Positions 28,392-64,000 of a DNA stretch of 64,000 nt are shown here, in pieces; within the stretch, counting starts at the first letter, position 1; each line of letters begins with the position of its first letter. The DNA comes from Blastocladiella emersonii ATCC 22665 (Eukaryota; Fungi; Blastocladiomycota), in NCBI GenBank assembly GCA_025594325.1, contig JANHCV010000001.1:1984001-2048000 (forward strand). The letters run 5' to 3'. The notes under the pieces were generated by a model that did no database searches, had not been told where the DNA came from, and saw only the letters and a list, made by a program, of their open reading frames with translations. Made by a program: the position numbers and the translations under genes.

Positions 28392-31300
28392 ATGGCCACC
28401 ACCAGCGTCAAGGTCGCGCTGCGCGTGCGCCCGCTCACCGCAAAGGAGACGCTGGCCAACTGCTCCGAGTGCATCTCGTACATTGCCGGCGAGCCGCAGG
28501 TCATCATCGGCTCGGACCGCTCCTTCACCTTCGACCACGTCTTCTCGCCCGACACCCCGCAGGCCAACCTGTACGACGAGTCGATCGCCCCGCTGCTCGC
28601 CAAATTCCTCGAGGGCTACAACGCAACCGTCCTCGCCTACGGCCAGACTGGGTCGGGCAAGACCTACTCCATGGGCACGGGGCTCGACGGCAACGTCAAC
28701 ACCGAGAACCAGGGCATCGTGCCGCGCGCCATCCACGCCCTCTTCGCCGAGCTCCCGCACCGCTACCCGCCGCCCTCCTCGGCCCAGGTCTCCGTGTCCT
28801 TTCTCGAGCTCTACAACGAGGAGCTCATCGACCTGCTCAACCCCGCCCTCGCCTCGGCCCGCATCGATGCGCGGCCCGGATCCGCACCACCACCATCGCG
28901 ACCCGCCTCCGCCGCGCCATGGTCGCGCGGCATGGCCTCGGCCGAGTCCGGCGACTCGGCCCTCCGCATCCGCGAGGACGAGTACGGCAACATTGTCTGG
29001 GTCGGCGTGCGCGAGGAGGTTTGCGGGTCGCCCGAACAGCTACTTGGGTGCGCTCTACTTCTACTCCCACCGCGTACGAGCTGTGTCACTCACTACGTCC
29101 GCCACCCCATAGATTGCTCAACAAGGGCTCGCTGTGCCGAACCACGGGCTCCACCGACATGAACATGGTCTCGTCGCGCTCGCACGCCATCTTCTCCGTC
29201 ACCCTCCGCCTCAACAAGGTCGACACCGACGGCTTGTCCGAAAAGATCACCTGCAAGTTTCATTTCGTCGATCTCGCCGGTTCCGAACGAGTACGTCTCG
29301 GTCCTCCCCGCATCCCTCCCGCACCCGACTCACGCCCCTGTTCACCCCGCACGTAGCTCAAGAAGACCAACGCCGAGGGCGCCCGCGCCAAGGAGGGCAT
29401 TGCCATCAACAGCGGCCTGCTCGCGCTCGGCAACGTGATTTCGGCGCTCGGTGACGAGTCGCGGCTCGAAAAGGGCGTCGGCCACGTCCCCTACCGCGAC
29501 TCGAAGCTCACGCGGCTGCTGCAGGACTCGCTCGGCGGCAACTCGCAGACCATGATGCTGGCGTGCGTGTCGCCCGCCGACTCCAACTTCCAGGAGACCC
29601 TCAACACGCTTAAGTACGCCAACCGCGCCCGCAACATCAAGAACAAGGTCACCATCAACCAGCAGACCGCCGCCAACTCGGTCGAGGTCCAGCAGCTGCG
29701 CACCCAGATCGGCCGCCTCAAGCTCGAGCTGTCCACGCTCAAGGAGCAGTACGGGCTCGGCGGCGCTGGCGGCGGCGGCGGCGACGGTACCGGGTCCGGG
29801 CTCGCCGGGTCGCGCGGCGGGTCGTACGAGAACCTCAAGATGCACGAGAACCACGCCATGGCCAACGCGTCGCTGCGCGTCACCATCTCGGACCTGCAGA
29901 ACGAGCGCGACAAGCTCGAGTTCAAGATCCAGCAGCTCCAGTCGCGCATCAAGAAGCTCGAGCAGCAGCTCCTCCAAATCCAGGCCGAGCGCGACACCCT
30001 GCTCCTCGAAAAGAACGGATGGTCGCTCCCGGCCCCCGCCGCCGCGCACCCTGCCGTCGACGGCGAGGACGCCGTCATGACCGACGCCGACCCTGCCGCC
30101 ATGACTGTCAACCCGCTCGTCACGTCGTACCTGACCAAGATCACGGAGCTGCAGCACGACCTCGCCGAGCGCGAGCAGGAGCTCGCCGTCGTCCGCCAGC
30201 AGGCCGCGCTCGTCTCGTCGGCCGCCGCGGGGCTCGACCGCCACCGGTCCATGTCCATGTCCATGGGCGGCAGCAACGGCGGCGGCCGTGCGCCCAAGCC
30301 GTTCCGGTTCGTGCTCCCCGGCTCGGCCGAGGCCGCCGGCCAGGACACCACGATCCAGGCCACGCTTGACCGCGCCCGCGAGCAGTGCCAGGAGGACATG
30401 AAGTTTCTGCTGCAGGCCAACGGCAAGGGGCTGCTCGCCACGGGCAGCGGCGGCGGTACCGGGTCGGCGGCCGGCGGCGGGGTCAACGCGCTGCGCGGCG
30501 GCAGCGGGTCGCCCGACCAGGGCGGGTACGACGACCAGTCGGTGATCAGCGAGGTGGAGCGGCCCATGGTGTTCGGCGGTGCGCTCGAGGTGCCGACGTG
30601 GGCCAAGACGCCGAGCGTGATCGACGGCGGTTCCGGCGGCGGTGGCGGCGGGCAGGACGACGCGCAGAGCAGCACGTCGGTGCAGCAGCCGCCCGAGGTG
30701 CTGTACCAGGCGCTGCACAAGATCCAGGCGGACCTGCAGATCAAGGAGGAGCTGATGACGCAGCTCGAGGCGACGCAGCGCGAGTACGTGGCCATGAAGG
30801 ACACGTACGAGGACAAGTTCTCGCAGCTGCAGAACGCGCTGCAGTCGATCCGCACTGAGCGCGACCTCGCCCTCGAGCGCATACAGGGCAACCCGCGCGA
30901 GAACCCGCGCGACGTGCGCGCGAAATACGAGGCCAAGGTCAAGCAGCTGCTCGGCGAGATCTCGGCGCTCCGCCGCAACCACATTGAGGCGACCAAGACC
31001 ATGGCGTCGTCGAAAAAGGCCGAGTTCGCCCTGCGCCAGCTCAAGCTCTCGGTCGAGGCCCTCAAGGCCGAGAAGCACCGCCTCATCAAGAAGATGCGCG
31101 AGGACGCCGACAAGTCGCGCGACCAGGCGCTCGCCGCCGAGCGCGAGATCCAGAAGCTCCGCCGCAAGGAGCGCATGGCCACCGAAATGGCCAAGAAGTT
31201 TGAGCGCAACTTCGAGCTCCAGAAGGTGCTCCTCAAGCGCCGCGCCGAGGAGATCGTCGCCACCCACCAGAAACTCAAGACCGTCACCAACCTGCTCAAG

Positions 31301-33022
31301 CGCACCGCCGGCGCCAAGGCCATCTCCAAGCTCGGGCTCGCGGGGATCGGCGCGACCAGCATCGCCGCCGGCAGCAGCGGTAGTGGCGGCGGCGGGTTCG
31401 GCGCGGGCGGGCGCCGCGGGTCCGCGTCGTCGGTCGCCGCGTCCGTGTTCGGCATCGGCGCGGGCGGCGGGAACAGCCGGCCCATCTCGAGCATGTCGGC
31501 GACGTCGTTTGCCGACGAGCAGTCCGAGATTGCATTGTCGTACCGCAAGCACCAGCTGTACAAGGAGATGGAGGCGGTGGTGACGGGCCAGCAGCTGTCG
31601 CGCGAGCTCGAGCAGCTCGTGACCAAGCGCAAGCGGCTCATGGACGAGAAGCACGAGCTGCTCAACGAGCGCGAGCGCGTGGTCGCGGCCGAGGCCGAGC
31701 GCAACGGGGTCGCGCCCGACCCGAGCGCCCCGCAGTACATGGACGACCGGCTCGAGGCCATTGACGCGGAGCTGCACTACGTCGAGGTGCGCATCAAGAC
31801 GGTCACGGACGAGGCGGCCAAGGAGGACGCGGGCCACAACGGCAACGGCGTGTCCGGGTACGACGCGGTCGTGCAGCTCGTGCGCACACTCAACGCCGAC
31901 GAGGCCACGGCGCTCCTGCAGACGGTCGTCGACGACTACATCCAGGTCCAGATCACGGCGCGCAACCAGGGCATGGAGGTGCAGCGCCAGGAGTCGCAGA
32001 TCGACGGGCTCCGCAAGAACCTCCTCCTCATGCGCAAGACGGCCATGAAGAACGCCGTCGACTACGAGAAGCGCATCAAGACCATGGCCGTCAACAACTA
32101 CCTCCAGTCCGCCACCATCCCCGCGTCCGCGTCCGCCATGGACCAGCTCATGGACATTTCCGTGTTCACGCCGTCCGCCGCCGCGGGCGCCACGCCCACC
32201 AACGCGCGCAACGGCGGCGGCGCCGCCGCCGGGACCGCGGGCCAACGCGGCTCGCGCGCCACGTCGCCCACCATGGCGAGCTCGCGCCGCCAGCACCACC
32301 AGCAGCAGCAGGACGACGACGCCATGTCGATTGCGAGCTCCACGTCCAGCTCGCCCGTCAAGGGCGGCGGGTCGATCGTGTACGGGCCCGACGGGCACCC
32401 GGTCGGCCCGCGCGAGTACCGCAGCATGTCGATCAGTAGCGCGGGCAGCGCCGCGACCGCCATGACCACCAGCACCACGGCGACCAACGCCACGGCGCGC
32501 CGGCGACCCGTGTCCTCGGCGTCCTCGCAGGACGTGTTCGAGCGGCTGTCCAAGACGTTCACGGTCGCGTCCCAGCTCAAGGTGCGCGACACCGCTACCG
32601 TCACGGACGCCAACGGCAACCCGATCGCCGGAGCGGCCGGCGGGTCGTCCCTCACGCGGCGCGAGTCGCACGAGCGGCTCAACCAGTCGTACGGGACCGG
32701 CGCCGCGGGCACCGGGTCCGGGTCGACGGTCAACCTCGCGCAGATCGACGAGGAAGGGAGCGGTAGTACCGCGCGCCGTCCGTCCACGTCGCCACCACCG
32801 TCGGCCGCGCACCCAAACTCGCGGCGGCCGGGGTCGACGACCCTGGCCGCGTTCGGCACCCACGCGTCCGCGCCCTACGACGCAAGCGCTGGACAAGGTA
32901 GTAGCGGCGGCGGTGCGTCGGCTGAGATTGACTTTGACCGGCCAGCACCCGCGGCAGCACCCGGCGACCGCGACGCGCAGCAGCAGATCGTGGACGTGGT
33001 CATGGACGAGAGCTCCGGATGA
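28392..33022 (+). CDS. Kinesin-4 family motor (KIF4/KIF21/KIF27-like)
   Basis: [18 protein letters not shown]-loop [28 protein letters not shown] and [22 protein letters not shown]. The stalk segment [20 protein letters not shown] is KIF21-like. Two introns near 29049-29111 and 29293-29355. Confidence 0.92.
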
Positions 33023-38820: not shown

Positions 38821-41750
38821 ATGGTCAAGGCCTACCTGCGCTACGCCCCCGGCAACGTCTTTGGCGTGATCGCCTCGACGACCGCCAACATCGCGTCCGA
38901 CGCCACGGGCCGCCTCGCCGTGTCGCCCGCGCTGCAGTCGGTCGTCGTGTGGGACACTAAGAAGGCCGAGTCTGTGACCGTGTGGCACGAGGAGGGCAAC
39001 ACGGCCGAGGTCTCGTGCATTGCCCGCGCCCCCGATGGCACTACCTACGCCGCTGGGTACGCGCACCTCGCCCGCGATGATCGCGCGTAGCCCGACCCCG
39101 TCTAACGCCCAACCCGCCGCCGCGTAGCTACACCGACGGCACCATCCGCGTCTGGTCGCTGACCGCCGGCACCACGCCGCTGCACTGGTTCCAGGGCCAC
39201 CAGTCGGCCGTCACCGCCCTCACCTTTGACCCGCAGGGCACCACGCTCGCGTCGGGCTCGCAGGACACCAACATTGTGCTGTGGGACCTGGTCGCCGGCG
39301 CCGGTAAGGTCCGCCTGACCGGCCACAAGGACCAGATCACGTCGCTCGTGTTCGTGCCCTCGGGCAGCGCGCTGCGCACCGCCGCCGAGCAGGAGGACAT
39401 GGCCGCGGGTGCTGAGCCGAAGCAGCAGCAGAAGGTCACGGACCGGAAGCTGCACCGCCTGCTCAAGTCGCTCCCCGCCGCGCACATCCTGTCCGCGTCC
39501 AAGGACACGACCATCAAGGCGTGGGACCTGACCACCAACGCGTGCGTCGAGACGGTCGTCACCCACCGCTCCGAGGTCTGGGACATGGCCCTCACCCACA
39601 TGTGGCAGGACGCCCCTGAGGTCCTGACCCTCGTCTCGGCCGGCGACGAGCTCAAGGTCCACAAGGTCAACGCCGACCACCTCGACCAGATCCTCGCCAC
39701 CGCCGCTTCCGCCTCGTCGTCCGCTGCTGCTGTGCCACCACCACCAACAGGTGACGCCGTCATCGCCGAGGCCGACGAGCCCCTGCGCGCCATCGTGCAC
39801 GCCGGCGACCTCAAGAAGGTCTCGTCGCAGCGCAGCGTGTCGCTCAAGCTGTCGCCGTGCCACACCTTCGTCATCGCCGCCTGCGTCGACACCCAGATCC
39901 AGGTGCTGCGCGTCCTCTCGCCCGAGGAGGCCAAGAGCAAGCTCACGCGCCGCCGCAAGCGCCTGCAGGACCGCGCGGCCAAGGCGCGCGCCGAGGGCAA
40001 GGAGCCGACGGCCGAGGAGCTCGGCGAGCCCGTGCTGGCCATTGGCGACCTGATCAGCCCGCTGTTCGTGGCGCTCGCCGACGCCAAGGTGCGCAGCGTC
40101 GACGTGTGCCCGTCGCTGCCCGCGCCCCGCAACACGCCCGCCAAGGCCGACGCGGCCACGTCCCCGCCCATCTTCACCTTCCTCGCGTCGCTCGCCAACA
40201 ACTCGATCAACGCGTACGCCGTGACCAAGGACGAGGTGCAGGTCCTCAGCACCGTCGACATGCACGGCCACCGCGGCGATATCCGCGCGCTCGCCCTCAG
40301 CCAGGACGACGAGCTGCTCGCCTCGGCCGGCACCAACCTCGTCAAGGTGTGGAACGTGCGCAACGCCAAGTGCATCCGCACCATGGACGCCGGGTACGCG
40401 CTGTCCGTGGCGTTTGTGCCCGGCGGCAAGTACCTGCTGGTCGGCACCAAGAGCGGCGAGCTGCAGATCTTCTCGCTCGCGTCGTCGGCGCTCGTCGAGT
40501 CCATCAAGGCCCACGACAGCGCCATCTGGAGCATCGCGCTGTGTCCCGACAAGACCGGGTTCGTGACGGGGTCGGCCGACCACCAGGTCAAGTTCTGGGA
40601 CTTTGCGCTCGTCCGCGAGGAGGCCAACCGGCTCACGGCCATCCACACGCGCACGCTCAAGCTGTCGGACGAGGTGCTCGCCGTGGCCATCTCGCCCAAC
40701 CAGAAGGTGGTGGCCGTGTCGCTGCTCGACGCCACGGTCAAGGTCTTCTACTACGACTCGCTCAAGTTCTCGCTGTCGCTGTACGGCCACAAGCTGCCCG
40801 TGCTGTGCATGGACATTTCGTCCGACAACACGCTGATCCTGACGGGGTCCGCCGACAAGAACATCAAGGTGTGGGGGCTCGACTTTGGCGACTGCCACCG
40901 GTCCCTGTTCGCGCACGGCGACGCCATCATGCAGGCCAAGTTCGTGTGGGGCACCCACTACGCCTTCACGTGCTCCAAGGACAAGACCATCAAGTACTGG
41001 GACCTCGACAAGTACGAGAACATCTCGACGCTGGCGGGCCACACGTCCGAGGTGTGGGCGCTCGCCATTGGCAAGTTCGGCAACTTTGTCGCGTCCGCGT
41101 CGCACGACCGCAGCATCCGCATGTGGGAGAAGACGGACGAGCAGCTGTTCCTCGAGGAGGAGCGCGAGCGCGAGATGGACGCGGCCGCCGACGCCGCCAT
41201 GGTCGAGGCCGCCAACGAGGCCGGTGCTGACGCCAACGGCGTCGCCCTGTCCAGCGCCGACTCGCTCAAGGCCGGCGAGCGCATCATCGAGGCGCTGCAG
41301 CTGTGCCTCGACGAGCGCGACAAGGCCGCGGCGCACGCCAAGTCGGGCCAGCCCGCGTCGGCACTCCCCGTCAACCCGATGCTCCTCGCGACCAACTGCG
41401 CCGACCCCGAGTCGTACGTGCTGCGGTCCCTCGAGCGCGTGCGGTCGGCCGACCTCGAGGCCGCGCTGCTCGTGATCCCCTTCTCGTACATCCCGCTGCT
41501 CCTCGAGCTCGCCGACCTGTGGGCTGAGCGCGAGTGGAACCTCGCCGTGACGTGCCGCGTGCTCTTCTTCCTGCTCAAGGTCCACCACAACCAGATCGTC
41601 GCCTCCCGCGCGCTCCGCCCGCGCCTCGTCAGCTTGCAGCACCACGTCCGCGCCGCCGTCGAGCGCCAGCGCGATATCATCGGGTGCAACATGGCCGCGT
41701 TCCGCTACCTCAAGCGCGAAAAGGAGTTCCTCTCGTCGTCGTCGTTCTAG
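38821..41750 (+). CDS. UTP12: U3 snoRNP WD-repeat protein Utp12/Dip2 (WDR3)
   Basis: MVKAYLRYAPGNVFGVIAS, intron near 39057-39127, many WD40 repeats (LYGHKLPVLCMDISSDNTLILTGSADKNIKVWGLDFGDCHRSLFAH) and a C-terminal Utp12 domain (DLEAALLVIPF). Confidence 0.96.
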
Positions 41751-43868: not shown

Positions 43869-46043
43869 TCACGCCCTCGCTCCGCCGCCAGTGACGCGGC
43901 CACCGCTGCCCGGCTTGGCCCCGGGCCCGATCCCGTTGAGCGTTGACACGACGAACCACAAGGCGTCGCGCGACGTCCAGTAGTCAAAGTGCGCGCGCAG
44001 GCCACCGAAATACTCGGCCGCGACGTCGACGTGCGCCGTGACGCGGCTGCGCGCGACCACGTTAGGCAGCACGTAGTCGATGCGCCACTCGCCGGGCAGC
44101 GTGTTGAGGGGCAGCGGCGAGCGTGGCTCGGGGATCGGTGCGGGCGACGCAGGCTCGAGGGTTGGTGGCAGGTCGATGGTAGTCCCGTCGTCGCGGCGAG
44201 GTTGTGCGGGCGAGGTCGCGGGCCGCCGTCTCGACCTCGAGCGGCGACGACTCGAGCGTGGTCGTGACGACGACCGGCGAGACTTCTCGAGCGATTCGGT
44301 CACGGCCTCGACTTCCTCGAGCGCCGCAGCCGCAGCGGCAGCGGCTGTCGTGTCCTTGGTCGGCGAACCGGCCGCGCTGCTGCCCATGAACATGCCCCAC
44401 AGCGTCGCGGCGGTGGTCATGATGGGGTCGGCGCTGCCGAGGAGCGAGGGCCGCGGCGAGAGCGGCTCGACGACACGGCGGCGCTTCCTTGGCCGCTCGC
44501 CCTGCTCGTCGTCGTCGTCGGAAGGGTCCGAGTCGCTCAAGTCGGGGTGCTCCTCGCGCTGCCGGCGGCGGTGGCGCACCTTGACCCAGTCGTCCCCGTC
44601 GTCGCTCAATGGGCTGGCGGACTTCTGGTCGAGGTCCATTGAGGCGGCAACAGCGACGCTCTCCTCGTCATCGTCCTCGTCGTCCTCGGCGGGGGTCCCG
44701 CACCCCTCGGGGCTCGCCTCGTTGTCGGACGCGTACCCGTCATCCTCGCCGTCCTCGTCGCTCCCACCGCCGGGGTGGTGCGCGTCCTCGAAGCGGCCCG
44801 ACCCGACGGCAAGCACGCTGGCGGCAAACGAGCGCACGCTCTGGGTGACGATGGTCGGGAGGAGCGGCGGCAGGCCGGGCATGGCGGGCATGGCGATGGT
44901 GGGCACGCGCGCGGCAATCGATCCCAGCAGCCGGACGTGCAGCGCGTCGCCGCCCGGCGCGCTCCCATCCGTGTAGAGCGGGACGGGGACGGGCGGATGG
45001 TCGGCCCAGCGCGCGTCGAACAGAGGCTCGTAGCGGTACGCGATCGGGTCGAGCGGGTGGTACACGTTGAAGAACTGGGCGCGCGGCGCGTACGCGTCGG
45101 GATCGTGGCCGCGCAGGACCAGCGCGTTGCTGATCGGGCTGCCCATGCAGAAGACGCGCGAGATGGGCACGTCGACGGGCTCGGTCGCGGGCGGGATCCC
45201 CGGCGCGGGCGTCGCGTTCATCAGGTCCCACATGACGAGGCCGCCCATCGAGTGCGCGAACACAGCGACCTGCCCGTCAAAGTCCGGGAACCGCGCGAGC
45301 AGGGCGCGGTACCCGGCGTTGAGCTGGCGCGCGACCGTGGTGCGGATGAACTGGCCGTTGTGCGCGGTGAAGTAGTAGAGCGGGTCGACGGCAAACTCGT
45401 TGACGACGGTGCGCAGCGCCGCGCACGTCGACAGCCGGATCGCGTCGACGCGCGCGCGGCTCGCGTCGTGCACCGCCGTGTGGTACTCGACGGGCTGCAG
45501 GTGGATCCGCCGGCACGTCTCGAGGCGCGGGTCACCCGCAACCGACGCGAGCGTCGCCCGCACGCGGTCCACGTTGCGCGGCAGCCAGTCCTGCCGCCCC
45601 ATGCCGTGCACGATGAAGACCAGCGCGTCGGGCTTCTCGCGCGGCGCCGGGTACGTGTACGCGTCGGCCGGCGACGTGGCGCGCGCGTGGTTTGGCGGAC
45701 GCTGGTGCCGCGGCGCGTGGTGGTGGTGCCCGCGGTGGTGATGATGTTGGTGGTGGTGATGGGCGTGGTGGCCAGGGCGCGGGCTCGGGCCGCCGACCAC
45801 GTCCCAGTCGTCCTCGTCCGCGTCCGCAGCGACGGGCGGCGAGATCCACGACGGAAGCGGGTTTACGGAGATGCTGGGCGCGGGCAGGCGTGGCCGATCG
45901 GGGTCCACGGTGCTCGGGGTCGCATCGGTGGTGGGAGGAGGGGCGGGCGCGAGGGACGGCGCGTCGTCGGCCGCGGTGCCGGTCCCGGCCTGCAGGAGCG
46001 GCAGCACGAGCGGGTCGTCGATGCCGAGGATCGGTTTGATCAT
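43869..46043 (-). CDS. DDHD-domain phospholipase A1 (Ddl1/PA-PLA1-like)
   Basis: LVFIVHGMG, lipase elbow AHSMG, FCMGSPI, FFNVYHPLDPIAYRYEPL and C-terminal RIDYVL...AHFDYW. Start set at MIKPILG (46043). Confidence 0.88.
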   Translation of the reverse strand: MIKPILGIDDPLVLPLLQAGTGTAADDAPSLAPAPPPTTDATPSTVDPDRPRLPAPSISVNPLPSWISPPVAADADEDDWDVVGGPSPRPGHHAHHHHQHHHHRGHHHHAPRHQRPPNHARATSPADAYTYPAPREKPDALVFIVHGMGRQDWLPRNVDRVRATLASVAGDPRLETCRRIHLQPVEYHTAVHDASRARVDAIRLSTCAALRTVVNEFAVDPLYYFTAHNGQFIRTTVARQLNAGYRALLARFPDFDGQVAVFAHSMGGLVMWDLMNATPAPGIPPATEPVDVPISRVFCMGSPISNALVLRGHDPDAYAPRAQFFNVYHPLDPIAYRYEPLFDARWADHPPVPVPLYTDGSAPGGDALHVRLLGSIAARVPTIAMPAMPGLPPLLPTIVTQSVRSFAASVLAVGSGRFEDAHHPGGGSDEDGEDDGYASDNEASPEGCGTPAEDDEDDDEESVAVAASMDLDQKSASPLSDDGDDWVKVRHRRRQREEHPDLSDSDPSDDDDEQGERPRKRRRVVEPLSPRPSLLGSADPIMTTAATLWGMFMGSSAAGSPTKDTTAAAAAAAALEEVEAVTESLEKSRRSSSRPRSSRRRSRSRRRPATSPAQPRRDDGTTIDLPPTLEPASPAPIPEPRSPLPLNTLPGEWRIDYVLPNVVARSRVTAHVDVAAEYFGGLRAHFDYWTSRDALWFVVSTLNGIGPGAKPGSGGRVTGGGARA

Positions 46044-46296
46044 TGCAGTGTTTCCATGAGCGAGGGAGGGTGATGGAGAGGAGAGGAGGGGAGGGGAGAC
46101 GAAGCGCGCCAAGGCATCGCTCGCGAACCGAAGGGACGTTGGCTGTTCGCTGACGTGCAGCGGCCGCCGCCACTCCTTGACGTCACCAGCACGCTCGGTG
46201 CCGCGTGAAAAAAGAGGGAGGGTGACGGTGTCGGTGTAGCTGACGGTGTATAGCAGGTGGTAAATAGTAGAGAATATGGTGGGTGGGGAGACAATA

Positions 46297-48066
46297 CTAC
46301 GCGTCGGCCTCGTCGTCGTCGTCATCACTCATGGCCATGACCTCCTCCTCCTGGTCCGCTTGATCGGCGACCGCCTCGGCCGGATTTGGCGCGGGCGTCT
46401 CGTCCTCGGCCTCCTCGTCCTCGTCCAGGGCCATGGTCTCGCCGGCGTCCTCGTCCTCCTCCTCGTCGAGCTCGAGCATGGGCCCGTCGTCGTCGTCGCT
46501 CATGGCCATGACCTCGCCGTCGTCCTCCTCCGCCTCCTCGGCGCCGGCAGCAGCAGCGGCGGCAGCGGCAGCGGCAGCCGCGGCGTTGGCGCTCGGGAGC
46601 GCGGCGCCGAGGATCGGTGCGCCCGACGCAGCGGCCGCCGCCGTTGCCGCGGCGACCGCGCTGTCGAGGCTCTCGAGCGGGGTGCCGGCCTCCTGCGCGG
46701 CGGCCATGGCGGCCGTGGTCGCGACGCCGCGCGCGGCGCGGTCGGCGGCGACGAGCAGCTCAATGGGGACGGGGCGCGTGAGGTCCGCGACGTCCATGCC
46801 CGAGGCAGTCGCGTAGTCGTCGAGCGAAATGTTGGCGGTGGTGGGCGGGGCGAGGGCGGCGTTGACGCGGTCCGGGTCGCGCTTGAGCTCCGAGTGGTAC
46901 TTGTTGCGCACGTTGACGCGCGTCTTGCCCGGAATCATGTGCGCAATGGCCTCGAAGTTGAGCCCCCACGCCGTCAGGCCCTGGTAGAAGACGTCCACCT
47001 CGTCGGCGCGCCACCGCGACCCGTTGCGGTTCGCGTTGCCGCGCGTGTGGTGCGCCTGGTTGTAGTACCGCCCGTGCGCCGCCGACTCCTCGATGATGCG
47101 CTGCGGGGCAGCCGGCCGCGGCAGCGCACGCGTCACGACCGCGTTCTGCACGACCATGCGCCCGTTGACGAAGGTGACCTGCGGGCCGAACGCGGCACCG
47201 CCGCCGCCCGAGGCGCCGTTGGCCCCGCCCTCGTCCTCGTCGTCACTCGGCATCATGCGCTCCTCGTCGACATCGTCCTCGTTCTCGTCAAGCGTCATGA
47301 CCTCCTCCTGCGGCAGGGCAGCGGCAGCACCACCGGCGGCGCCAGCGGTTGCCTCGGCCTCGGGTGCGACGACCGTGACGCCGGCGAGCTTCATGGCCTC
47401 CTCCTCGCGGATGCGGCGCTCCTCGAGATACAGCTCGCGGCGGAGGCGGAACTGCTCCGTCGGGCTCGACGCCGCGGCGAGGGTAGCAGCGCGGCGGCGG
47501 GCACGAGCACGGCGGTCACGTCGGATCGTGAGGGCGAGCTTGTCGCGGCTCTCGGTCGCAACGCCCGCCGCCGTCATAGTCCCAAATTGGCCCGCCGTCG
47601 TGCAGAAGAAGGCGAGCGGCATCGCGGCGCGCGTCTCGTCGTCCGACAGGTCGACGCCGTCCGTCGGCAGCGGCGTCTTGGGGCGGCGCGGGGCGCGCGC
47701 GCGGCGAGACGCCGTCGAACCGGTCGCCGACGCAGTATCGTCGGCACCACCGTCCTCCTCGGCGTCGGGTTGCATCGTCTCCTCGCCGTCGCCATTCACA
47801 CTGCTGCCGTCGCGCGACGGCTGGTCCTCGGGGTCCGCGCGCGAGGCAGGGCGCGGCGGACCGGTCGGTCGTGGGCGGTTGCGCGGGACGGCGATTGGGA
47901 CGGCGGGCGGGCGGGAAGTTGAGATGACGGTTGGGACGGTGGGTGGGCGGGAGGTCGAGATGACGGTCGGGACGCGCGGGGCGGAACCCGGCGGGCGCGG
48001 CGGGCCGATGACGGTCGGACCGCGCGGGGGAGCGACCCCCGGGATGGAGATGGGGATGCCCGCCAT
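46297..48066 (-). CDS. BDP1: TFIIIB subunit B'' (Bdp1) SANT-domain protein
   Basis: SRWRADEVDVFYQGLTAWGLNFEAIAHMIPGKTRVNVRNKYHSELKRDPDRVNAAL (Bdp1-type SANT), preceded by PQVTFVNGRMVV; acidic tail. Start uncertain. Confidence 0.85.
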   Translation of the reverse strand: MAGIPISIPGVAPPRGPTVIGPPRPPGSAPRVPTVISTSRPPTVPTVISTSRPPAVPIAVPRNRPRPTGPPRPASRADPEDQPSRDGSSVNGDGEETMQPDAEEDGGADDTASATGSTASRRARAPRRPKTPLPTDGVDLSDDETRAAMPLAFFCTTAGQFGTMTAAGVATESRDKLALTIRRDRRARARRRAATLAAASSPTEQFRLRRELYLEERRIREEEAMKLAGVTVVAPEAEATAGAAGGAAAALPQEEVMTLDENEDDVDEERMMPSDDEDEGGANGASGGGGAAFGPQVTFVNGRMVVQNAVVTRALPRPAAPQRIIEESAAHGRYYNQAHHTRGNANRNGSRWRADEVDVFYQGLTAWGLNFEAIAHMIPGKTRVNVRNKYHSELKRDPDRVNAALAPPTTANISLDDYATASGMDVADLTRPVPIELLVAADRAARGVATTAAMAAAQEAGTPLESLDSAVAAATAAAAASGAPILGAALPSANAAAAAAAAAAAAAGAEEAEEDDGEVMAMSDDDDGPMLELDEEEDEDAGETMALDEDEEAEDETPAPNPAEAVADQADQEEEVMAMSDDDDDEADA

Positions 48067-48465
48067 GCCGTCGAATGCAGCGGGTCGGATCGTTGATGCG
48101 TGTGCTTCGTTGGCGGTGGGTGCGAGAGCGTGGGGATCAGGGGTGCTCAGCGCAACGAGCGGGCGGACGGGCGGGCAGGCAGCCGGGCAGCAGGGGGACT
48201 TGGCCCCCATGCCGGGCAGGCGGCCGGGGCGGAGACAAACCAGCTCACGTGTGACAGCATGACGAGGAAAATCCGCGGAACCCGCGAGACGCGTTCCGCC
48301 GCTTCCTCTTGCGAGTCACACTGCTCGCCGGGTGCGTCGCCGTCCATGAATCCATGAACCCGTCACGGCCACGCGTGAGCGACCCGACTTGACGCATCGA
48401 GCGCGTCGTTGCACCCAGCGCCGCTGGCTCCATCCACCTCGACCCGATCGCCCCATCCTGCACCC

Positions 48466-51400
48466 ATGGACCCGCGGCCGACCATGACCAACGGCGGCCA
48501 CACGGCTCCTTCGAGCGTGCCTGCGCCGCTGCCGACCGGAACCGTGTTCGGCGCGTCGCCCATCCCCGCCGTCGTCACGCCCGGCATCGTGCGCGTCGAG
48601 GACGTGAACCGCTCGGTCCATCGCGCCCTCGGCCGCGCTCCCCTGACCACCGTCCCGACCGACACCATCAAGGGTACTTCTACCCGGATGCACCATGGTG
48701 AATCGACCGGAAACCGTGGGACTGAGCGCTGCGCGGTCGTGTAGTCGCCGCCCTGCTCTACGCGCCGACCGAGGTGACCATCGCCAACCCGGGCGACCGG
48801 TGGTCGACCAACGCGCTCGCCCCGCACGAGTTCCGCCACCTCGTCTCGGACGCGGCGTGGGCCGGCCCGCTGAGTGCCGCTGTCGCCCACACGGCCACGA
48901 CCGCGGTCCCGCTCATGTACGCGCGCCCCTCGGTCTCGCCCTCATCCCCGCCGCGCCGTCTGACTCCCATTCCGTAGGAACGTGCGCCGCATGCCCGCGA
49001 CCCCCACGGCCACCCTCTCGCCGCCCGTCACGCTGAGCAGCGGTCAGCCGCGACTCGCGCTCGCCGAGATCATCGCCGCCGCGCTCCCGCTCCACGTCGA
49101 CCCGCCACCCGCGCAGCCGCGGCCTCACCTGCCCTTCCTCTCGGACGCGCACGTCGACTCGGTTATGGCGCGCTACACGACGCGTCGCTCAACTCCCGCC
49201 CCGGCCCCGGCCCCGGCCGCAGCCGCTACCGCCGTCGCGACCGGCCGCGCTATCGGCAAACCCGTTCGTCCACCCGCACCGCCCGCACCGGTGGCCCACC
49301 CTGCCGTTTCCACGGCCGATCGGCTGCTCGCTCCGCGGCGCCGCCAGCCGTCCGACATTGTCGTAGAGATCCCCCTGAGCGGACCCGCCGTCCAGGCCGC
49401 CGCCCAGCACAAGCGCAAGCGGCTGTCGAATGACGCTGCCCCTACCGCGGCCGCCGCATCGCAGGCTCGCTCGGCGACCCCGTCCTCGAGCCTGCCGCCG
49501 CCCGCATCGACTACCCCGATCCCCGACGACAACGACGGCGACTACGTGCCCGACACCGACATGGCCGACGTCGCCGCCCCGTCACCACCACCGCCGCGCC
49601 CCGTCAAGAAGCAGCGCACGGGCAAGGCCCCCGCCAAGTCGGCCCAGGCCCTCGAGCACCTCGTCTCGCAGATCCGCTCGCCCACCCCCGACCCCGCCGC
49701 CATCGCCACCTCGCTCCGCCGAAACGTCGTCTCGCAGCTCGTCGACGCCCTCACCAACGGGCTTCTCGCCCTCTCTGACGCCGAGGCCCGCACCCTCGTC
49801 GCCTCGTGCCTCCCGCTCGTCAAGCCGTTCACGGCCCGCACCATCCTCCGCCCGCGCCGCCGGCGACCCGATGACGGCGACTCGCGCAAGGACAGCGGTC
49901 GCGGGCTGAGTCCCGGCGCGCCCGCCGATCCGTCGCGCCCGCATCACGCTGACGAAGCCATGGACGTCGATGACGACGACGACGAGTCCGAGGATGACGA
50001 CGATTCGGACGCGGCGCGGGGCGCGCGCCTCGCTACCCTCCTCGACTCGGTCCTCCTCGCCGTCGACGCCGCCCAGGCCATTGTTCTGCTCTACACGGCC
50101 TACCCTGACACGCTGACGACCGACGCAGTCGCCGCCATCGGCGACCTGTTCAAGAACCAGATGCTCGAGTCGGTCGTGCCCGTACTCGAGGCCCGCGAAC
50201 GCGGCGACGTGGACGACGACGATGACTACGCCGCGAAACCGACGCGCGGCGGCGCCAAGGCCAAGGGCAAGGGCAAAGCCGCTGCCGCCGCCGCCAAGTC
50301 CGCGTCGCTGCCCAACGAGTACGAGAGCAACCACCTCATGCTGCCCGCGCGCATTCTGTCGAGCAACCCGCGCCTCGAGAAGTCGGCCCAGTCGCTCATG
50401 CACGCCCTGTGTGCGCTCACGCTGCGCCTGCGCAACCTCGTCGCCGTGCACGCGCACAAGGCCGCGCTCGAGGAGTTTGCCATCTCCATCTCGTACGGCG
50501 CCATGGCGCCCGTCTTCATGGGCACCGCCGCCGACCCGCTGCTGCAGATGCGCGGGCTCGAGCTCGTCACCGCCGTCGCCGCGCTCCGCGCCGACCTGCG
50601 CCAGGGTATCATCGACGAGGTCGTTGCCAACCTGATCCACAGCTCTTCGGCCTCGGCCGGTTCCACGGGCGCGGCGCGGCGCACCGTGCGCCGGTACAAG
50701 CTCGCCGACGGGACCTCGATCCAGCTCGCCACCGCGCTCGTCCTGCACCTGATCCAGGCGGCCGCGCCGTCCGCGGCCGACCTCGGCGCCTCCATGGCCG
50801 CCGCGAGCAAGCACGTGGCACCGCCTCCGCCGCTCGACGAGTCCAAACGCTACGCGGGGCACGTCGTGCAGTACCTACTCGCGCGCGCGACGAAAAAGTC
50901 CAAGTCGGCCGTCACCAACGAGGCCGACTACCTTGCGCTGCTCCGCGCCGTGTTCGAGGACGTGGTCACGGTACTGCCCTCGCCCGAGTTCCCCGCCGCC
51001 GAGCTCGTTGCGTGCATCACGCTCCAGCTCATGATCCCCGTCGTTGAGGACGAGGGCACCACCGATATCTCGGTCAAGTCGCTCGCCATGGACATCTTCT
51101 CGTCGCTCCTGTGCCACTCGCGCAAGCTAACGGCCGAGCACGGCGCCGTCGACGCCAAGTCGATTGCCCGCGCCAAGCGCGTCGTCGCAGCGTATCTCGA
51201 GCAGGCCGCCAAGGGCGATAGCGGCGCGGCGTCGGCGCTCAACTACCTCCGCGCCGAGTGGGCCACGCTCGATCGCGCCAACGGCAGGGTCGAGGATGGC
51301 AAGGCTGCCGCCGTCGCCGCCAGCGCCGCGGCTGCCGTTGACGCGGCTGAGGACGACGGGCTCGACTTCATGCGGAGCGATGACGAGGAGGACCAGCCCG

Positions 51401-54400
51401 TCGACGCGGCCGCAGCGCCCGCGCCTCAGCAGAAGGACGCCGACGACACAAAGCCGCTCCTCGACGTGTCGCGCGCCGCAGCGCTCGAAGCGCTGCACAA
51501 GCTCCTCGTCGGCGCGTCGATGCTGCACAAGTACACGGAGCCGCTGCTCGCGCGCATCGTGCGGTGGTTCGAGGCCAAGGAGACCAACGTGCGCAGCCGC
51601 GCCATCAAGGTGCTGTCGGCCGTCGGGCAGGTCGACCCGACCATCATGTCGCAGCCGCGCGTTCTGGGCGCGATCCAGGCGCGCCTCGACGACCCGTCGC
51701 CATCGGTCCGCGACAGCGTGCTCGAGGTCGTCGGCAAGTGGATCCTCGGGTCCTCGGGCCCCGTCAACCACGGGTACCTCAACATCCTGTGCGCGCGGAC
51801 CGTCGACCGCGCGACGAGTGTCCGGAAACGCGCCATCAAGACGCTCGGCGCGCTCCGCACCCGCGTCGAGGTGCCCGACCTCATCGAGATTGCGGTGCGC
51901 CTGTTCCACCGTATCTCCGACGAGGAGACGAGTATCGCCGACACGGCCAAGCGCGTGCTCGTCGACATCATGTTCCCGCCCGCGCCCAGCGGTGTCTCGG
52001 CCGCCGCCGCCGCGACCTCGGCCGCCGACTACGACCCGGACGCGGCGTCGCTCGCCTTCGCCGCGCTCAAGCAGACGCAGCGGCTCGACGTGCTCTCGCA
52101 GGCGCTCGTGTTCTGCGGCGTCGTCGCGCGCGTGGACGCCGACCCGCTCGTCTACTTTTTGCGCTCCGACAGCGTCACGCTCGGCCTCCTCCCACCCGCG
52201 CTCTTCCACTCGATCCAGACGGGCGCGCCGCTGGCCCCGCAGACCCTCGACGCGCTCGCCGCGCTCGCCGTCCTCGCCCGCGCCGCGCCGCGCGCCGTGT
52301 CCGCCGAGATGCTCACGGCGTGCGTCAATTTCGTCACGTTCCCCATGCCGCAGCAAGCGCGGCACGCCGAGGCGATCAACCGCCAGTCGCTCCTCGCGCT
52401 CGGCCTGTTCCGCGAGGCCCTGGCCGCGGGCGAGCGCGACCCCGACGCCGCGGCGCCGCTCGCGTCCAAGGTCCTCGACGACCTCGTGGTCAGCGCGCTG
52501 CGCGTCGTGCAGTGGGGCGTGCTCGCCAACGTGCGCGCTGCCGTCGCCGTCGCGTGTTTCGCATCGCGCCGCTTCTCGGCTACGGCGGCCGCCGCGGCGG
52601 CGGCGGAGACCCGCGTCCAGACCCTCCTGCAGGGCGCGACCGCGCAGCTCGTCAAGTGCCGCGACGCGCTCGGTCCCGACGGGTCCGGCGCGCTGCCCGC
52701 TAAGCTGAGCGAGGTCCACGTGCGGCGGCTGCTCGCCATCGTCGGCGCGCTCGCGCAGTACCACGCGATGCAGCAGCCGTCGTCCGCGGACAAGGGTGCC
52801 GCCGCCGCCGCGGTCACGTCCGACACGGTGTTCGACGTGCTGCGGTACTTCTGCGGCCCGTGCGGGCTCTCGGAAACCACGCGGTCGTCGGCCATGCAGG
52901 CGGTCGGGTTCATGACGCTCCAATTTAGCAAGCTGCTGATGCTCGCGCCGATGCTGCGGCTCATCAAGGGCGTGCTCGATGCACGCGACGCCGAGCCGCT
53001 CATGGCCGAGGCCGCGCTCGATATGATCGTCCAGTTCATGTCGCGCGAGGACGCCAAGGCGGCCGAGAAGCAGAAGTCGGGTACGGTCTTGCGTTGTTTC
53101 GGCTAGTACTTGTGCAGTGACTGACGCGATTGCGCGAGCGTTTAGGGGCGCTGGACTTTGACCGGCAGGCGTTCCTCGGCACGACCATGGAGTTTGCGAC
53201 GTCGGGCATCGCCGAGTCGCTCGCGCAGGCGTTTGTGTCGGACATTGTCGCGTGCGCGCTCATGGACGCGATGGACACGGTGCGGCGGCGCGTCGTCGAT
53301 CTCGCGCAGGAGGCGATTGGGTTTATCTCGCTCAACCGGCTCGCGCACCCGAAGCTCGTGATGCCCGCGGTCGTCGCCCTCGGCACCTCGCCCGACTCGC
53401 AGGTCGCGGCCAAGGCGCGCGTGCACCACGCCAAGCTCCACTCGCAGCACGCGTCGACCATCTACGACGCCAACCGCGAGGCCGTCATCGCCGCGAGCGA
53501 CTACCAGGCGCGCGTGCAGCGGTCGGCGGCACCGCTCGGGTACGCGGCCGCGTCGGCCTCGGGCGAGTCCGCGGGCGTCGTCGCGCACCTCGCCCCGTTC
53601 TACGCGGTGATCCGCGATACCAAGCGCGAGCGCCGCGCGTTCCTCCACCTGCTCGTCCGGTTCTTCGAGTGGCGGCTGCAGGCCACGTCCACCGCGCCTC
53701 CCGAGGCTGTCCCAGCAGCAGCTGTCGGTCCTCGGCGCGGTCGGGCACCTGCAGCAGCAGCATCGGCAGCAACCACCGCGGCGAACGACGGCATGCAGGG
53801 CGTGCCCACGGCCACGGACGTGGGGCGGTGCCGGTGGCTCGCCGACAACCTGGCGACGCTCGAGTTCAAGCACGAGGACGAGGTGCTGGCCGTGATCCAG
53901 ACGGCGAACCGCGTCGTGTCGAGCGTCGCGGTCGCGGTGCAGGTCGACCTCGAGCGGCAGCTGCACGCCGCGAGCAACAGCAGCGGAGCCGCGACCCCGA
54001 TCTCGCCCGACGCGCCCACGTCGCCGCAGCGCGAGACGGCGTGGCCCCTCGCCGAACTCGTGCGCGCGGCCGCGGTGTCGGCCATGCTCGTCGCGGCCAA
54101 GGGGTACCTGACGCGCGCGTTCGGGCTGTCGGCGGCCAAGGTGCGCAACTTCCGCGACACGCCGGCGGCGGCCACGGGCCGCGGCGCGATCGCCAAGTCG
54201 GTGGCGCGGCGCGACGAGGTGCCCGCGTACGTGTGCCCCGTCGACGACGCGCACCTCGCGGTCCTCGCGTCCGCGACGGCCACGGCGGCCGAGGTCGAGG
54301 CGATCGCGGCGCCCGTCCACGCGCTCCTCGAGGGCCTGCTCGACCAGGACCCCGCCCTGCACGACGAGACGGCTGCGGCGGCCGCGCTCGCCGCGAACGG

Positions 54401-54584
54401 CGTGTCGATCGGCGAGTCCATGGCCGACACTTCGTCGGACGCGACGTCGGTGCTCGTGCCCACGTCCGACGACCCGCTCGCGTCCGTCACAGCGCCACCG
54501 CCGCCGCCGCCGCCGGCGACGCGGGCCAAGCGCGCGGCTTCGGGTCGCAAGGCTGCACCGCGGCGTAAGGCGAGCGGGGCGTGA
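48466..54584 (+). CDS. SCC2: Cohesin loader Scc2/NIPBL
   Basis: HEAT segment ETNVRSRAIKVLSAV..DP..RLDDPSPSVRDSVLEVVGK..DRATSVRKRAIK and a Nipped-B C-terminal segment GIAESLAQAFVSDIVACAL...HPKLVMPAVVALGTS. Two 5' introns plus an intron near 53082-53147. Confidence 0.92.
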
Positions 54585-59976: not shown

Positions 59977-60298
59977 CGGCCAGCCGCGGCCGCGGCCGCG
60001 AGCAGTGTGTAAGTCTACGTACCCATTTTTGAAGGTCCCGGCCCGGCGCGCGCTCGGTGCGAGGCAGGGCAATATTTTCTATATACCTCATCTCTTTCTT
60101 CTTCCTCTTCTTCACCACGGGCTGTTTTTGGAGGAGTGGGAGAGGGAGCGGCTAGCAACGCGTCACGGCGCCTGTGCAACACGCAGAGTTTTTCAGCGGC
60201 GGGTCGGTCGGCCCCGGCTGCTGCCGCCCACGCTCTCTCTCCTCCTCCCGCCTGCCGCCTTGCCCCTTTTGCTCCCTCCCTCTGCGCCCGGGCTGCCT

Positions 60299-60910
60299 GA
60301 TACCCAGCGCTCTCCGCACACTACCACGCATCGCTACGCATCGCCCTGTGCCGCCGACCTGCTGCTCCAAACACGCGCGCGCGCACGCCCTGCCACCGCT
60401 AGTCTGCCCGTTCTACGCCCGCCGCTCCACGGACTACACGCCCTGAGCCACCAGTGAGCCCGATCCGACTGAGCCGCCGTCGTGCTCGTCCCCAACCTTG
60501 ATCGCGACCGTCTCCCCCCGCGGTACGACTGCCGACCGGCCCCATGGTCGCCCCACAGCAAGCTGACCGGGCTCGATCCGCATCTAGCTCGTCTCTCTCC
60601 TCCCTGATTTCCATGTCGTTGTGATCGCGACCCGCGTGAAGGCCTTTGATACCCCCTATACCCCCGTCCTTCGCGTCGACCGTCGCCTTCTATCCCGTTT
60701 GACCCCCGCACGCCGCTCCGCCGCTCCGCGATACCCTGCCCTATCGTACGTCTGCTCCTGCGCTCGCCCGATCCGCCGCCTGTGTCTCTAACCGTCGTAC
60801 GACTTGCGCAGGAAACCCATCGGATCGATACCCTCTCCCCTATACCCCTCCTCCTTCGCGCACGCTGCTCCGTCGTCCGCTGGCCAACCCACTTTTTGAC
60901 TGGATACCCC
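60299..60910 (+). repeat. Cluster of sense-strand (G/T)ATACCC motifs in the 5' leader of the RRM-YTH gene
   Basis: GATACCC at 60299, 60648, 60730, 60827 and 60903; TATACCC at 60657 and 60841. Confidence 0.85.
60746..60811 (+). other. Candidate 5'-UTR intron of the RRM-YTH gene
   Basis: GTACGT donor at 60746, CTCTAAC branch near 60786, GCAG acceptor ending 60811 (66 nt, typical size here). Confidence 0.65.
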
Positions 60911-60994
60911 GGCCCGCCGTCGACCTGCACCGTCCCGCGACCTCCTCCTTCATACTCCCCTCCTTGCACTCTTGCTCGCGCCCCTCTCTCAACC

Positions 60995-63487
60995 ATGCTC
61001 TCCGGCGATCCTACCGATTCCCCGACCCGCGACCGCGACTATGAGGCCGCTGCCGGCTCGCCCACGACCTCGTCGTCGTCGGCCTCGCCCTCGCCGCCCG
61101 CCTCGGACCAGCCGAGCCCTACCACCCAGCGCTCGCGCCGCGCCCTCTACGGCCGCAGCCTCTCCACGCCCGCCGCCGGCATGCACTCGGCGGCTGCAGC
61201 GGCTGCCGCGGCCCTCGCCCAGCTGCGTGTCTCGGCCGACCCCGAGACTGCGGCCGAGTCGGCCACGGGCCCTGACCCGCCCGCCGACGCGCCCGCCGCT
61301 GCGACGGCGCCCTCGGCCGAGTCCGAGTCGCCCGGTGAACCCGCCCTGCCGGTGGTGACCTCGGGCTACCCGCTCGTCCCTGTGCCGCCGCCGCCGCCGC
61401 CGACGCCGCGCCACCGGTCCATCTGGGTCGGCAACATCAGCGAGCGCGCGACGCGCGACGACCTCGTGGCGCTGTTCGGCTCCTTCCCGGGCTTCATCGA
61501 CCTCTACTACATGAAGCACACGCGCTCCGCCTTCATCAACATGGCCACCGACGACGCCGTCGAGGAGGCCGCACTCCACTTCCATGGCCAGGTCTTCCGC
61601 GGATCGCGTCTCATTTGCCGCTCGCGCCTGCACAAGACGGCCGTCGCGGCCGCTTCGTCCTCGTCGTCGCCGACTCCGGGTGTGCCGGTGCCGCCCATGT
61701 CCTTCGCCGCCATGACCATGCCCGGCGGCGCCGCGAACACCGTCGCGCACCAGTTCGGCTCGCACCCGCCGCCCCCGCCGCTCGGTGCACACCACCAGGT
61801 CATCTACGGCCCGCCCCAGTGGATGCTCGTCCCGACGCCGTACCCGTACGCCGGCGGCGCGCCCGGGTCGCCCGGTCCTCCTGCGGGCGCGGGTGCGCAG
61901 TCGCCGACGGCTCAGCAGCAGCAGCAGCAGGCGCCCTCGCAGCAGCAGTCATCCATGTCGGCTGCCGCTGCCGCCGCTGTCGCCGCGTACAACTACTACG
62001 GCTACGTCCCCGGCCAGGCCCAGCAGGCGTCGCAGCCGCAGCAGCCGCAGCAGCCGCAGCAGCCGCAGGCCGGAGCGTTCGGCCCGCCCGTCCCCATGCC
62101 GCCGCTCCCGCCGCCGCCGCCGCACGGGTACCCGTCGCCCCAGCAGCCGCAGCAGGCCCCGCAGCAGCAGCAGACCGACCTCGCAGTGTCGCAGGAACCC
62201 GTCCCCGGCGGCGGTGGCGCGCCCGGCTACCCCGCCGTCCCGCCCGGCATGGTCCCCGTCTACGGAATGGGCGTCCCTGTGCACGGGATGAATGTCCCCG
62301 TCGGCGTCGTCAACCTTGGCATGCTCATGCACCAGCAGCAGCAGCAGCACGGCGCGCACCCGATGCACCCGTCGTCCTCGCTCATGTCCGCCGGCGCGAG
62401 TAACATTCCGCCGCCGCCGCCGCCGCCTGGCCTCGGGATGCCGCCTTCCGCTGCCGCCGGGTCCGAGTGGGCTACGTCGCCCGTTCCTGGCCCCGTTCCG
62501 CACGCGGGTGGGCCGCGCGGGAGCGGTATGGTCGCGGCGGCGACCCCGTCGTCCTCGGGCACCGCCCAGCCCGCCGTCGCCACGACCACGACTGCGAGCG
62601 GCGGCCCGTCGTGCCGCTACTTCATCATCAAGAGCCTGTCGCTCGAGGACCTCGAGCTGTCCATGAAGCACTGCATGTGGTCGCCCCAGGTGCACCTCGA
62701 GGCGATCCTCGACCAGGCGTTCAAGGTACGACTGTGCCGCGTTTTTGCGGTGGTTGAGCAGTGACTGACGGTGCACCGCGGTGTAGACGACCGAGTGCGT
62801 GTACCTCGTGTTCAGTGTCAACAAGTCGGGCGAGTTCTTTGGATTTGCTCGGTACGTTCGTCGTCGGTGTCGCTGGGCTCGTGTGCAATGCTGACCCGTT
62901 CCTCGATCTGTAGCATGACCACGCCCGTCGGCCCCGGGCCCAAGCTCAACTGGTCGATCCAGGAGAGCTCGCGCAAACAGCAGTCGCTCGGCGGCGTGTT
63001 TGGTCTCCAGTGGCTCATGATGTACGCTTTTCTCGCACCGACCGAGCCCCGCCCTCGATCGTGACTGACCCGCGCTTGCGACTCACGTGTCTAGCCAGCG
63101 GCTCCCGTTCAGCCAGGTGCGCCACCTGCACAACCCGTGGAACGCGGGCAAGGAGGTCAAGGTGTCGCGCGACGGGACCGAGCTCGAGCCGCACGTCGGG
63201 CACGCGCTGCTCATGGAATTTTACCAGTTCCACCGCGCGCAGCTCGCGCTGTCCATGCAGGGGGTCGCGCCGCAGTACCCGGTGCCCAAGTACGTTGACG
63301 TCGCCGCTGGTCTTGGGTGAGCATGCGCTAACTTGCGTTCCCTGCGCGCTCATGTAGACGCTTCGCCGCGTACATCCACCCGTACCCGGGGGCGGGCATC
63401 CCGGTCCCCATCCCCGCGCCTATCCCGGTCCCGCATCCGCAACACCAGCACTACGACCCGCACGGTGCCGCGCCGGGCCCTTACTAA
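60995..63487 (+). CDS. RRM + YTH-domain RNA-binding protein (YTHDC-like m6A reader)
   Basis: RRM SIWVGNISERATRDDLVALF..SAFINM. YTH domain RYFIIKSLSLEDLELSMKHCMWSPQ..LDQAFK|..VYLVFSVNKSGEFFGFAR|M..LNW..SLGGVFGLQWL|..LPFSQVRHLHNPWNAGKEVKVSRDGTELEPHVG. Four introns in the 3' part; last exon ends GPY*. Confidence 0.92.
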
Positions 63488-63531
63488 GCCCGATCCACGA
63501 CAAGACACGGCTGCACCCGCTCGTTTGGCTG

Positions 63532-63825
63532 GATGATACCCCCCGACTACCGTTTACCAGCCCGACACGGTGCAGCCGCCGCAGGTCCACGACGCGCGCA
63601 TGGCCATCATCTCCACGCTGCCTTTCCCTCCCTCTTTTCTTACCCTCCTAGCGCCAGCTCACTGCAGCGATGGCCCGACCAGCCCGTGCGCGCGCGCGTG
63701 GATCTCTCTCTTCCGCCCTCTTTCAACAGCAACAACATCGTCTCATTTTTTCCTTCGCTTTTCGTTTCCCGTTCGTGTGTGATGATACCCCCCTCCCTCC
63801 TCACTTTTGATGCGATGATACCCCC
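63532..63825 (+). repeat. Three copies of the 12-mer GATGATACCCCC in the 3' flank of the RRM-YTH gene
   Basis: Exact copies at 63532, 63781 and 63814. Confidence 0.9.
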
Positions 63826-64000
63826 TCTCCCTGATCGCTCCGAGGAACAAGAATACTACAGCACGCTTTTTTGACGTCTATACATCGACGCGCTCGCGGC
63901 CGCGAGGGCGACGATGGCCATGGTCATCGTGGCGACCATGGCCACGGCCACGGCCACGGCCGTCACTGTCGCACAACGAGAGCGGCCACATCAGGGGTCC

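Follow-up and report, generated by a model that had tools for sequence, protein, structure and literature searches.

A sense-strand AUACCC cluster flanking an RRM-YTH gene of Blastocladiella emersonii matches the core of the Khd4 recognition element

In a stretch of 64,000 nucleotides (nt) of the Blastocladiella emersonii ATCC 22665 genome (contig JANHCV010000001.1, positions 1,984,001 to 2,048,000; hereafter the window), ten copies of the heptamer (G/T)ATACCC flank a single gene encoding a protein with an RRM and a YTH domain, all of them on the coding strand of that gene. The cluster is real and lies far beyond chance. Its core, AUACCC in RNA, is identical to the sequence that the multi-KH protein Khd4 of Ustilago maydis is known to recognise (PMC10450656). 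Because the copies are sense-only, confined to the presumptive untranslated regions (UTRs) and conserved in Allomyces, the element fits a sense-strand cis-element that would act at the RNA level. We give about an even chance to the reading that the mRNA of this YTH1-type gene is a densely marked target of a putative Khd4-type KH protein, and we assign the cluster, which marks the gene of a putative N6-methyladenosine (m6A) reader in an early-diverging fungus, only provisionally to the AUACCC/Khd4 type.

All window counts were obtained by pattern searches and shuffles over both strands of the 64 kb. KATACCC (K, G or T) occurred 13 times against 2.72 expected, a number reached in none of 100 shuffles. 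Ten of these occurrences lie on the plus strand, seven at 92-696 nt 5' of the ATG of the YTH gene (60299, 60648, 60657, 60730, 60827, 60841, 60903) and three at 48-330 nt 3' of its stop codon (63535, 63784, 63817). The search reproduced exactly the ten plus-strand coordinates and three 12-mer positions given in the original prediction, and its observation of no copy in the coding sequence (CDS) and no further plus-strand copy in the window was likewise borne out: KATACCC was absent from both strands of the gene body (60995-63487) and from every other intergenic or non-coding region of the window, which holds at least 17 genes. The reverse strand carries three copies (15286, 26191 and 50604) rather than the two reported before, 26191 being the addition, and each falls within a long coding open reading frame (ORF) with high G+C at third codon positions (GC3). 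The bare hexamer ATACCC was found elsewhere in the window three more times on the plus and four times on the minus strand, always as a singleton and at about chance level, while the 12-mer GATGATACCCCC occurred three times (63532, 63781, 63814; 0.12 expected in the window). When every non-simple, strand-specific 7-mer was scored without bias for local clustering, GATACCC ranked first in the whole window; the cluster is therefore not a general trait of intergenic DNA in this genome, and with ten sense copies and no antisense copy in the flanks of the gene the motif is no common, strand-unbiased simple repeat. A literature search on the 7-mer returned primer noise only.

Since the flanks are rich in C (39-46% on the plus strand), they were also shuffled on their own, in 5000 dinucleotide-preserving shuffles. 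The seven copies of the 5' flank (0.14-0.16 expected) and the three of the 3' flank (0.05 expected) were never reached, and at the hexamer level ten sense ATACCC stood against 0.40 expected and zero antisense GGGTAT against 0.04. The base 5' of the core is G in eight copies and T in two; A and C do not occur there, even though C is the most frequent base. AUACCC itself is invariant in 10 of 10 copies, with varying surrounding sequence. In local folds nine of the ten motif copies exceeded the median 7-mer in accessibility, if only mildly. We also observed UUUG at most about 12 nt 5' of five of the ten copies (window 60645, 60894, 63521, 63805; e.g. TTTGATACCCC, TTTTTGACTGGATACCCC, GTTTGGCTGGATGATACCCCC), a feature absent from the Allomyces copies.

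The CDS starts at 60995 and consists of five exons separated by four introns of 61-73 nt with GTACG...CTRAC...YAG signals. GTACGT at 63290 was taken as the last donor rather than GTGAGC at 63318, because it gives the ...PK|RF... junction that Allomyces also has; the stop codon therefore falls at 63485-63487, and all three 12-mers lie 3' of it. Protein searches, run exon by exon and not on the joined spliced protein, identified PF25701 (RRM_YTH1, 2.5e-07), PF00076 (RRM_1, 3.6e-07) and PF04146 (YTH, 1e-06) in exon 1, with PF04146 spanning exons 1, 2 and 4. The order of an RRM (PF25701/PF00076) followed by a YTH domain (PF04146) places the protein in the YTH1 family, an architecture found fungus-wide, with PF25701 and PF04146 in all homologues retrieved; the closest proteins are those of Catenaria anguillulae and Allomyces macrogynus. 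The pieces of the YTH domain aligned best with YTHDC2, YTHDC1 and CPSF30, and the W of ...CMWSPQ... and the segment ...HLHNPWN...VSRDG... are conserved. By these comparisons the domain looks like a DC-type YTH domain with an intact m6A-cage region, which suggests that it reads m6A in the ordinary way and is no Mmi1-like reader of sequence. In Fusarium, YTH1 shows a sharp and transient induction at conidial germination, while the Ustilaginomycotina possess only PHO92-type YTH proteins and no YTH1 (PMC10826363).

Several features suggest that most copies are transcribed. The leader intron at 60746-60811, recognized in the original prediction and upheld here as a predicted intron, agrees with the CDS introns in signals and size. 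Together with a second candidate at 60523-60587 it makes two matches to the intron pattern in the 1-kb leader, beside the four in the CDS and none on the opposite strand, where shuffles give about 0.09 chance matches per kb per strand. Four of the 5' copies lie at or 3' of the leader intron and six lie 3' of the second candidate; splicing of the latter would delete the ATG at 60544 and spare the final three codons of the upstream ORF (ATG 60613). All ten copies are enclosed by two AT-rich patches (60061-60117 and 63842-63886), which in a genome of 69% G+C are likely promoter and poly(A) landmarks, and the Allomyces locus is arranged alike. The neighboring ORF upstream of the locus terminates at 59973. 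From this arrangement we infer that seven copies would reside in a long 5' leader with one or two introns and an upstream ORF, and three in a 3' UTR of about 350-400 nt. Beyond the second AT-rich patch, at window 63883-63937, overlapping palindromes of 20 and 24 nt with 75-90% complementarity were observed.

The three 12-mers, which keep an extra GAU prefix, share one frame of an ORF at 63533-63874 (MIPP...). This ORF was rejected as a coding small ORF, its GC3 of 0.60 comparing with 0.86-0.95 in real CDS of the window. A resemblance of the 3' copies to C/D box small nucleolar RNAs (UGAUGA...CUGA) was dropped after an Rfam search gave nothing relevant: over the region, the covariance models returned just two sub-threshold matches to microRNA models, located away from the 3' copies.

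The association of gene and motif is kept in Allomyces macrogynus. The orthologous locus (L002) carries GATACCC at -130 and -117 from the ATG, a pair spaced 13 nt as compared with 14 nt at 60827/60841, and a 3' copy at +373 nt from the stop codon, in the form GATACCCCCCC. These three UTR copies have the exact ATACCC core, preceded by G in 3/3. Over the 10-kb locus ATACCC occurs five times, always in sense orientation, with no antisense copy; in flank shuffles the two 5' copies compare with 0.012 expected (1 of 5000 shuffles reached two) and the single 3' copy with 0.026. The flanks of the two species can otherwise barely be aligned; the top 3' alignment has the motif at its centre (E 0.008), and of the two top-scoring 5' alignments one has CGCGATACCCT at its end in both species. 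A further GATACCC at L002:4759-4765 lies across a 3' splice site (cacgtAG|ATACCCGTC) and is partly coding, and was excluded from the UTR count. The best 5'-flank alignment joins window 60394-60448 to L002:3804-3865 (E 4e-04) in a block around CTGCCCGTTCYACGSCCGCC, which forms a second conserved island in the leader or promoter.

In U. maydis, the tandem KH3-KH4 domains of Khd4 bind AUACCC, and de novo motif discovery around hyperTRIBE editing sites yielded this motif only, in about 81% of the Khd4-edited transcripts, whereas the antisense GGGUAU was unenriched. The motif is found mainly in 5' and 3' UTRs with a preference near the 3' UTR start, and when placed in a 3' UTR it reduces reporter mRNA and protein in a Khd4-dependent manner; the regulon comprises about 200 mRNAs for regulatory proteins, some 3% of genes (PMC10450656). 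Homologues of Khd4 are reported from Cryptococcus and Candida (review, PMC3798556). Every sequence property of this system that could be compared was found at the YTH locus: the core in 10/10 copies and in the three Allomyces UTR copies, the restriction to the sense strand, and the position of the copies outside the CDS. The original prediction of a new cis-element therefore falls on the side of novelty, the core having been published, and its view of a protein reading its own mRNA through the RRM or YTH domain found no link between the motif and the encoded protein; what stands of it is a sense-strand, RNA-type element conserved in Allomyces.

Under the Khd4-type reading, a multi-KH protein of this kind would bind the (G/U)AUACCC sites in the YTH1-family mRNA and thereby render it short-lived, while the copies in the 5' leader might lower translation or simply add binding sites. 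Synthesis of an m6A reader could in this way come in short, sharp pulses as the life cycle passes from one stage to the next. The life cycle of the organism is known for abrupt, RNA-driven transitions. The reading presupposes, by inference, that the mature mRNA contains the copies, that the organism has a Khd4 orthologue recognising them, and that the effect is destabilising. The Khd4-AUACCC code would then predate the split of Blastocladiomycota and Dikarya and, in the Blastocladiaceae, would have been wired onto an m6A reader, coupling KH-mediated decay to epitranscriptome reading. If true, a stability code characterised to date in a single smut fungus would also operate in an early-diverging zoosporic lineage and represent an old post-transcriptional code of fungi; the YTH1-type mRNA would be an exceptionally dense natural target, with ten sites mostly in the 5' leader; and decay mediated by a KH protein on the mRNA of an m6A reader would link two layers of RNA control.

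A number of observations weigh against this reading. Transcription start site, leader introns and poly(A) site have all been placed by prediction, and the copy at 60299 may sit in the promoter. Even in Ustilago the motif alone is no predictor of regulation (PMC10450656), and no role has been established there for copies in 5' UTRs. Neither the fixed G/U before the core nor the 12-mer of the 3' UTR (GAUGAUACCCCC) is known to have been described for Khd4. The conservation around orthologues expected by the original prediction holds for both Allomyces flanks but extends neither to Catenaria, with one copy only, about 620 nt past the stop codon, nor to seven more distant orthologous loci (Umbelopsis, Coprinopsis, Cryptococcus depauperatus, Bipolaris and three metagenome or assembly contigs), where no enrichment of the motif was found; the Coprinopsis orthologue has a single copy at +74. 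YTH1 orthologues are unenriched even where the fungus is known, or has been reported, to possess a Khd4 homologue, and by sequence comparison the gene-motif association looks confined to the Blastocladiaceae. With regard to Catenaria, the annotated orthologue P0001 on MCFL01000014.1 (478 aa, 4001-5498) looks truncated at both ends, and the real gene appears to extend over about L001:3419-6500, with a frame of RRM and YTH exons that opens at an ATG near 3419 and closes at a TAG near 6500.

RNA-binding proteins commonly regulate their own synthesis, and the RRM (of the RRM_YTH1 type) or YTH domain encoded here might itself bind (G/U)AUACCC in its leader and 3' UTR, in the latter as GAUGAUACCCCC, and feed back on stability, splicing or translation, an m6A-independent, sequence-specific analogue of Mmi1 and its target hexamer. 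The motif is private to the YTH gene in the window (ten copies here, none in other non-coding regions), its association with the gene is kept in Allomyces, and the published Khd4 hexamer accounts for neither the G/U fixed at -1 nor the 12-mer of the 3' UTR. A regulon the size of that in Ustilago, about 3% of genes, would equally leave a window of 17 genes without a second target, though, and a YTHDC-type domain with cage-region residues should read m6A, while AUACCC is neither the m6A consensus DRACH nor the Mmi1 determinant of selective removal (DSR). The RRM and YTH domains are, moreover, conserved across fungi; conserved domains reading a code of their own lead one to expect enrichment at the orthologues, which was not seen at the loci listed above. 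As an exact match to the proven motif of another protein is the simpler explanation, we consider self-binding quite unlikely. It and an ancient Khd4 code are not mutually exclusive, and the idea of a new autoregulatory code is to be weighed against the Khd4 hypothesis before being built on. An unlikely but not negligible alternative is that another RNA-binding protein, for example a poly(C)-binding KH protein using the C-run and its pyrimidine-rich context, reads the copies and that the match to Khd4 is coincidental. C/U-rich sequence does follow the copies (CCCCCUCUCCC and similar), the extended 12-mer and the upstream UUUG in 5/10 copies suggest a wider or bipartite site, and the Khd4 orthologue is only putative here. 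Against this, what is invariant in all ten copies and in Allomyces is exactly AUACCC, with variable flanks, and the chance that a conserved hexamer would match one of the few experimentally defined motifs of fungal RNA-binding proteins should be small.

The copies could alternatively act in DNA, where a Reb1-like Myb protein or some other transcription or chromatin factor would bind them (GGGGTATC/GATACCCC) at promoter and terminator or at insulators. They lie on both sides of the gene, that at 60299 may be 5' of the transcription start site, and the Allomyces leader contains TTACCCCC variants and GATACCCG, which presumably recall the Reb1 consensus (TTACCCG-like). Yet the 13 flank copies of the two species are all oriented alike with respect to the gene, a uniformity for which composition accounts only in part (a sense:antisense ratio of about 10:1 is expected, at very low absolute numbers), most 5' copies are 3' of predicted leader introns and hence within the predicted transcribed region, and no other promoter in the window has a copy; a site of this kind therefore seems improbable to us. 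That the cluster has no function and arose where C-rich UTR sequence slipped or was duplicated locally is very unlikely. The copies at 60648 and 60657 form a 9-nt tandem duplication, those at 63781 and 63814 share about 20 nt at a distance of 33 nt, and the sense strand is as C-rich as given above, but composition-preserving shuffles never attain the observed counts, the copies extend over 600 nt and 290 nt and have unrelated sequence around them, and they occur independently in both Allomyces flanks, in sequence that is otherwise unalignable.

The features of the locus and the other genes of the window are listed in Table 1. By Pfam content, no KH-domain gene was found within the 64-kb window.

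Table 1. Features of the RRM-YTH locus and neighboring genes in the 64-kb window (positions in the window).
Feature	Position	Strand	Remarks
AT-rich patch	60061-60117	none	30-nt windows of at least 60% A+T; has TATATAC; 5' of all copies; presumptive poly(A) region of upstream gene and/or YTH promoter
GATACCC copy 1	60299-60305	+	696 nt before ATG; membership in transcript uncertain
Second candidate leader intron	60523-60587	+	GTACGA...CTGAC...TAG, 65 nt
Leader upstream ORF	60544-60624	+	from sequence
Copies 2 and 3, abutting	60648-60663	+	GATACCCCC and TATACCCCC
GATACCC copy 4	60730-60736	+	10 nt 5' of the 5' splice site of the leader intron; aligns with Allomyces copy L002:3871
Leader intron	60746-60811	+	GTACGT...CTAAC...CAG, 66 nt; predicted
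Copies 5 and 6, GATACCC and TATACCC	60827-60847	+	spacing 14 nt
GATACCC copy 7	60903-60909	+	92 nt before ATG
Exon 1, 577 codons	60995-62725	+	low-complexity regions; RRM (RRM_YTH1/RRM_1) residues 142-211; YTH start residues 541-577
Exon 2 (YTH)	62787-62851	+	PF04146 1.7e-05
Exon 3 (YTH, ...LQWLM...)	62914-63021	+	frame runs on from exon 2 and into exon 4; same reading in the orthologues of Allomyces and Catenaria
Exon 4 (C-terminal half of YTH, RHLHNPWN...VKVSRDG)	63095-63289	+	PF04146 5.4e-11; YTHDC2 8.7e-10; YTHDC1 8e-07
Exon 5, stop TAA 63485-63487	63358-63487	+	from sequence; junction as in Allomyces
Copy 8, GATGATACCCCC	63532-63543	+	45 nt past stop; aligns with lone Allomyces 3' copy
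Copy 9, GATGATACCCCC	63781-63792	+	12-mer match
Copy 10, GATGATACCCCC	63814-63825	+	12-mer match
AT-rich patch	63842-63886	none	just 3' of last copy; presumptive poly(A) region
Est1-like (weak match)	1684-2529	-	Pfam
TPH domain	4512-5570	+	Pfam
GNL3L/Grn1 GTPase	11927-13618	+	Pfam
PPR protein	19160-23005	+	Pfam
BET double bromodomain	23942-27052	-	Pfam
KIF21-like kinesin	29357-33019	+	Pfam
WDR3/Utp12	39081-41747	+	Pfam
DDHD lipase	43872-46328	-	Pfam
Myb protein	46300-48315	-	Pfam
Nipped-B/Scc2	48964-54581	+	Pfam

The locus can be compared with four known systems. Mmi1 reads its DSR without m6A. In Schizosaccharomyces pombe this system likewise combines clustered, strand-specific hexamers in the transcript with a YTH-domain protein, but the hexamer differs: the DSR is U(U/C/G)AAAC and the motif here (G/U)AUACCC, which, as the original prediction rightly stated, does not conform to DRACH either, the A before C in GAUACCC being preceded by U and not by a purine. 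The YTH domain is also unlike that of Mmi1 in being YTHDC-like with residues of the m6A-cage region, and sequence comparison gives no indication that it would read sequence in place of m6A. With autoregulating RNA-binding proteins, such as Bicaudal-C, which controls its own expression via CCR4-NOT (cited in PMC10450656), the locus has in common an RNA-binding protein gene whose own UTRs are dense in one motif, although the motif here matches the specificity of a different protein. With the fungal YTH1 clade of putative m6A readers (PMC10826363) it shares the defining domain architecture, a likeness at the protein level only; a cis-element has yet to be described for any YTH1 gene. The Khd4-AUACCC system of Ustilago differs in its host, a basidiomycete and not a blastocladiomycete, in that the Khd4 orthologue is putative here, in the number and placement of copies, ten on one mRNA and most of them in the 5' leader, and in the target, which here is a gene of the m6A-reader type and not a regulator of membrane trafficking. 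It has in common with the YTH locus the same hexamer core, sense-specific and located in UTRs rather than in the ORF (here by the gene model), a copy near the 3' UTR start, multiple copies that recall the bound and destabilised six-copy reporter, and a target that codes for a regulatory protein.

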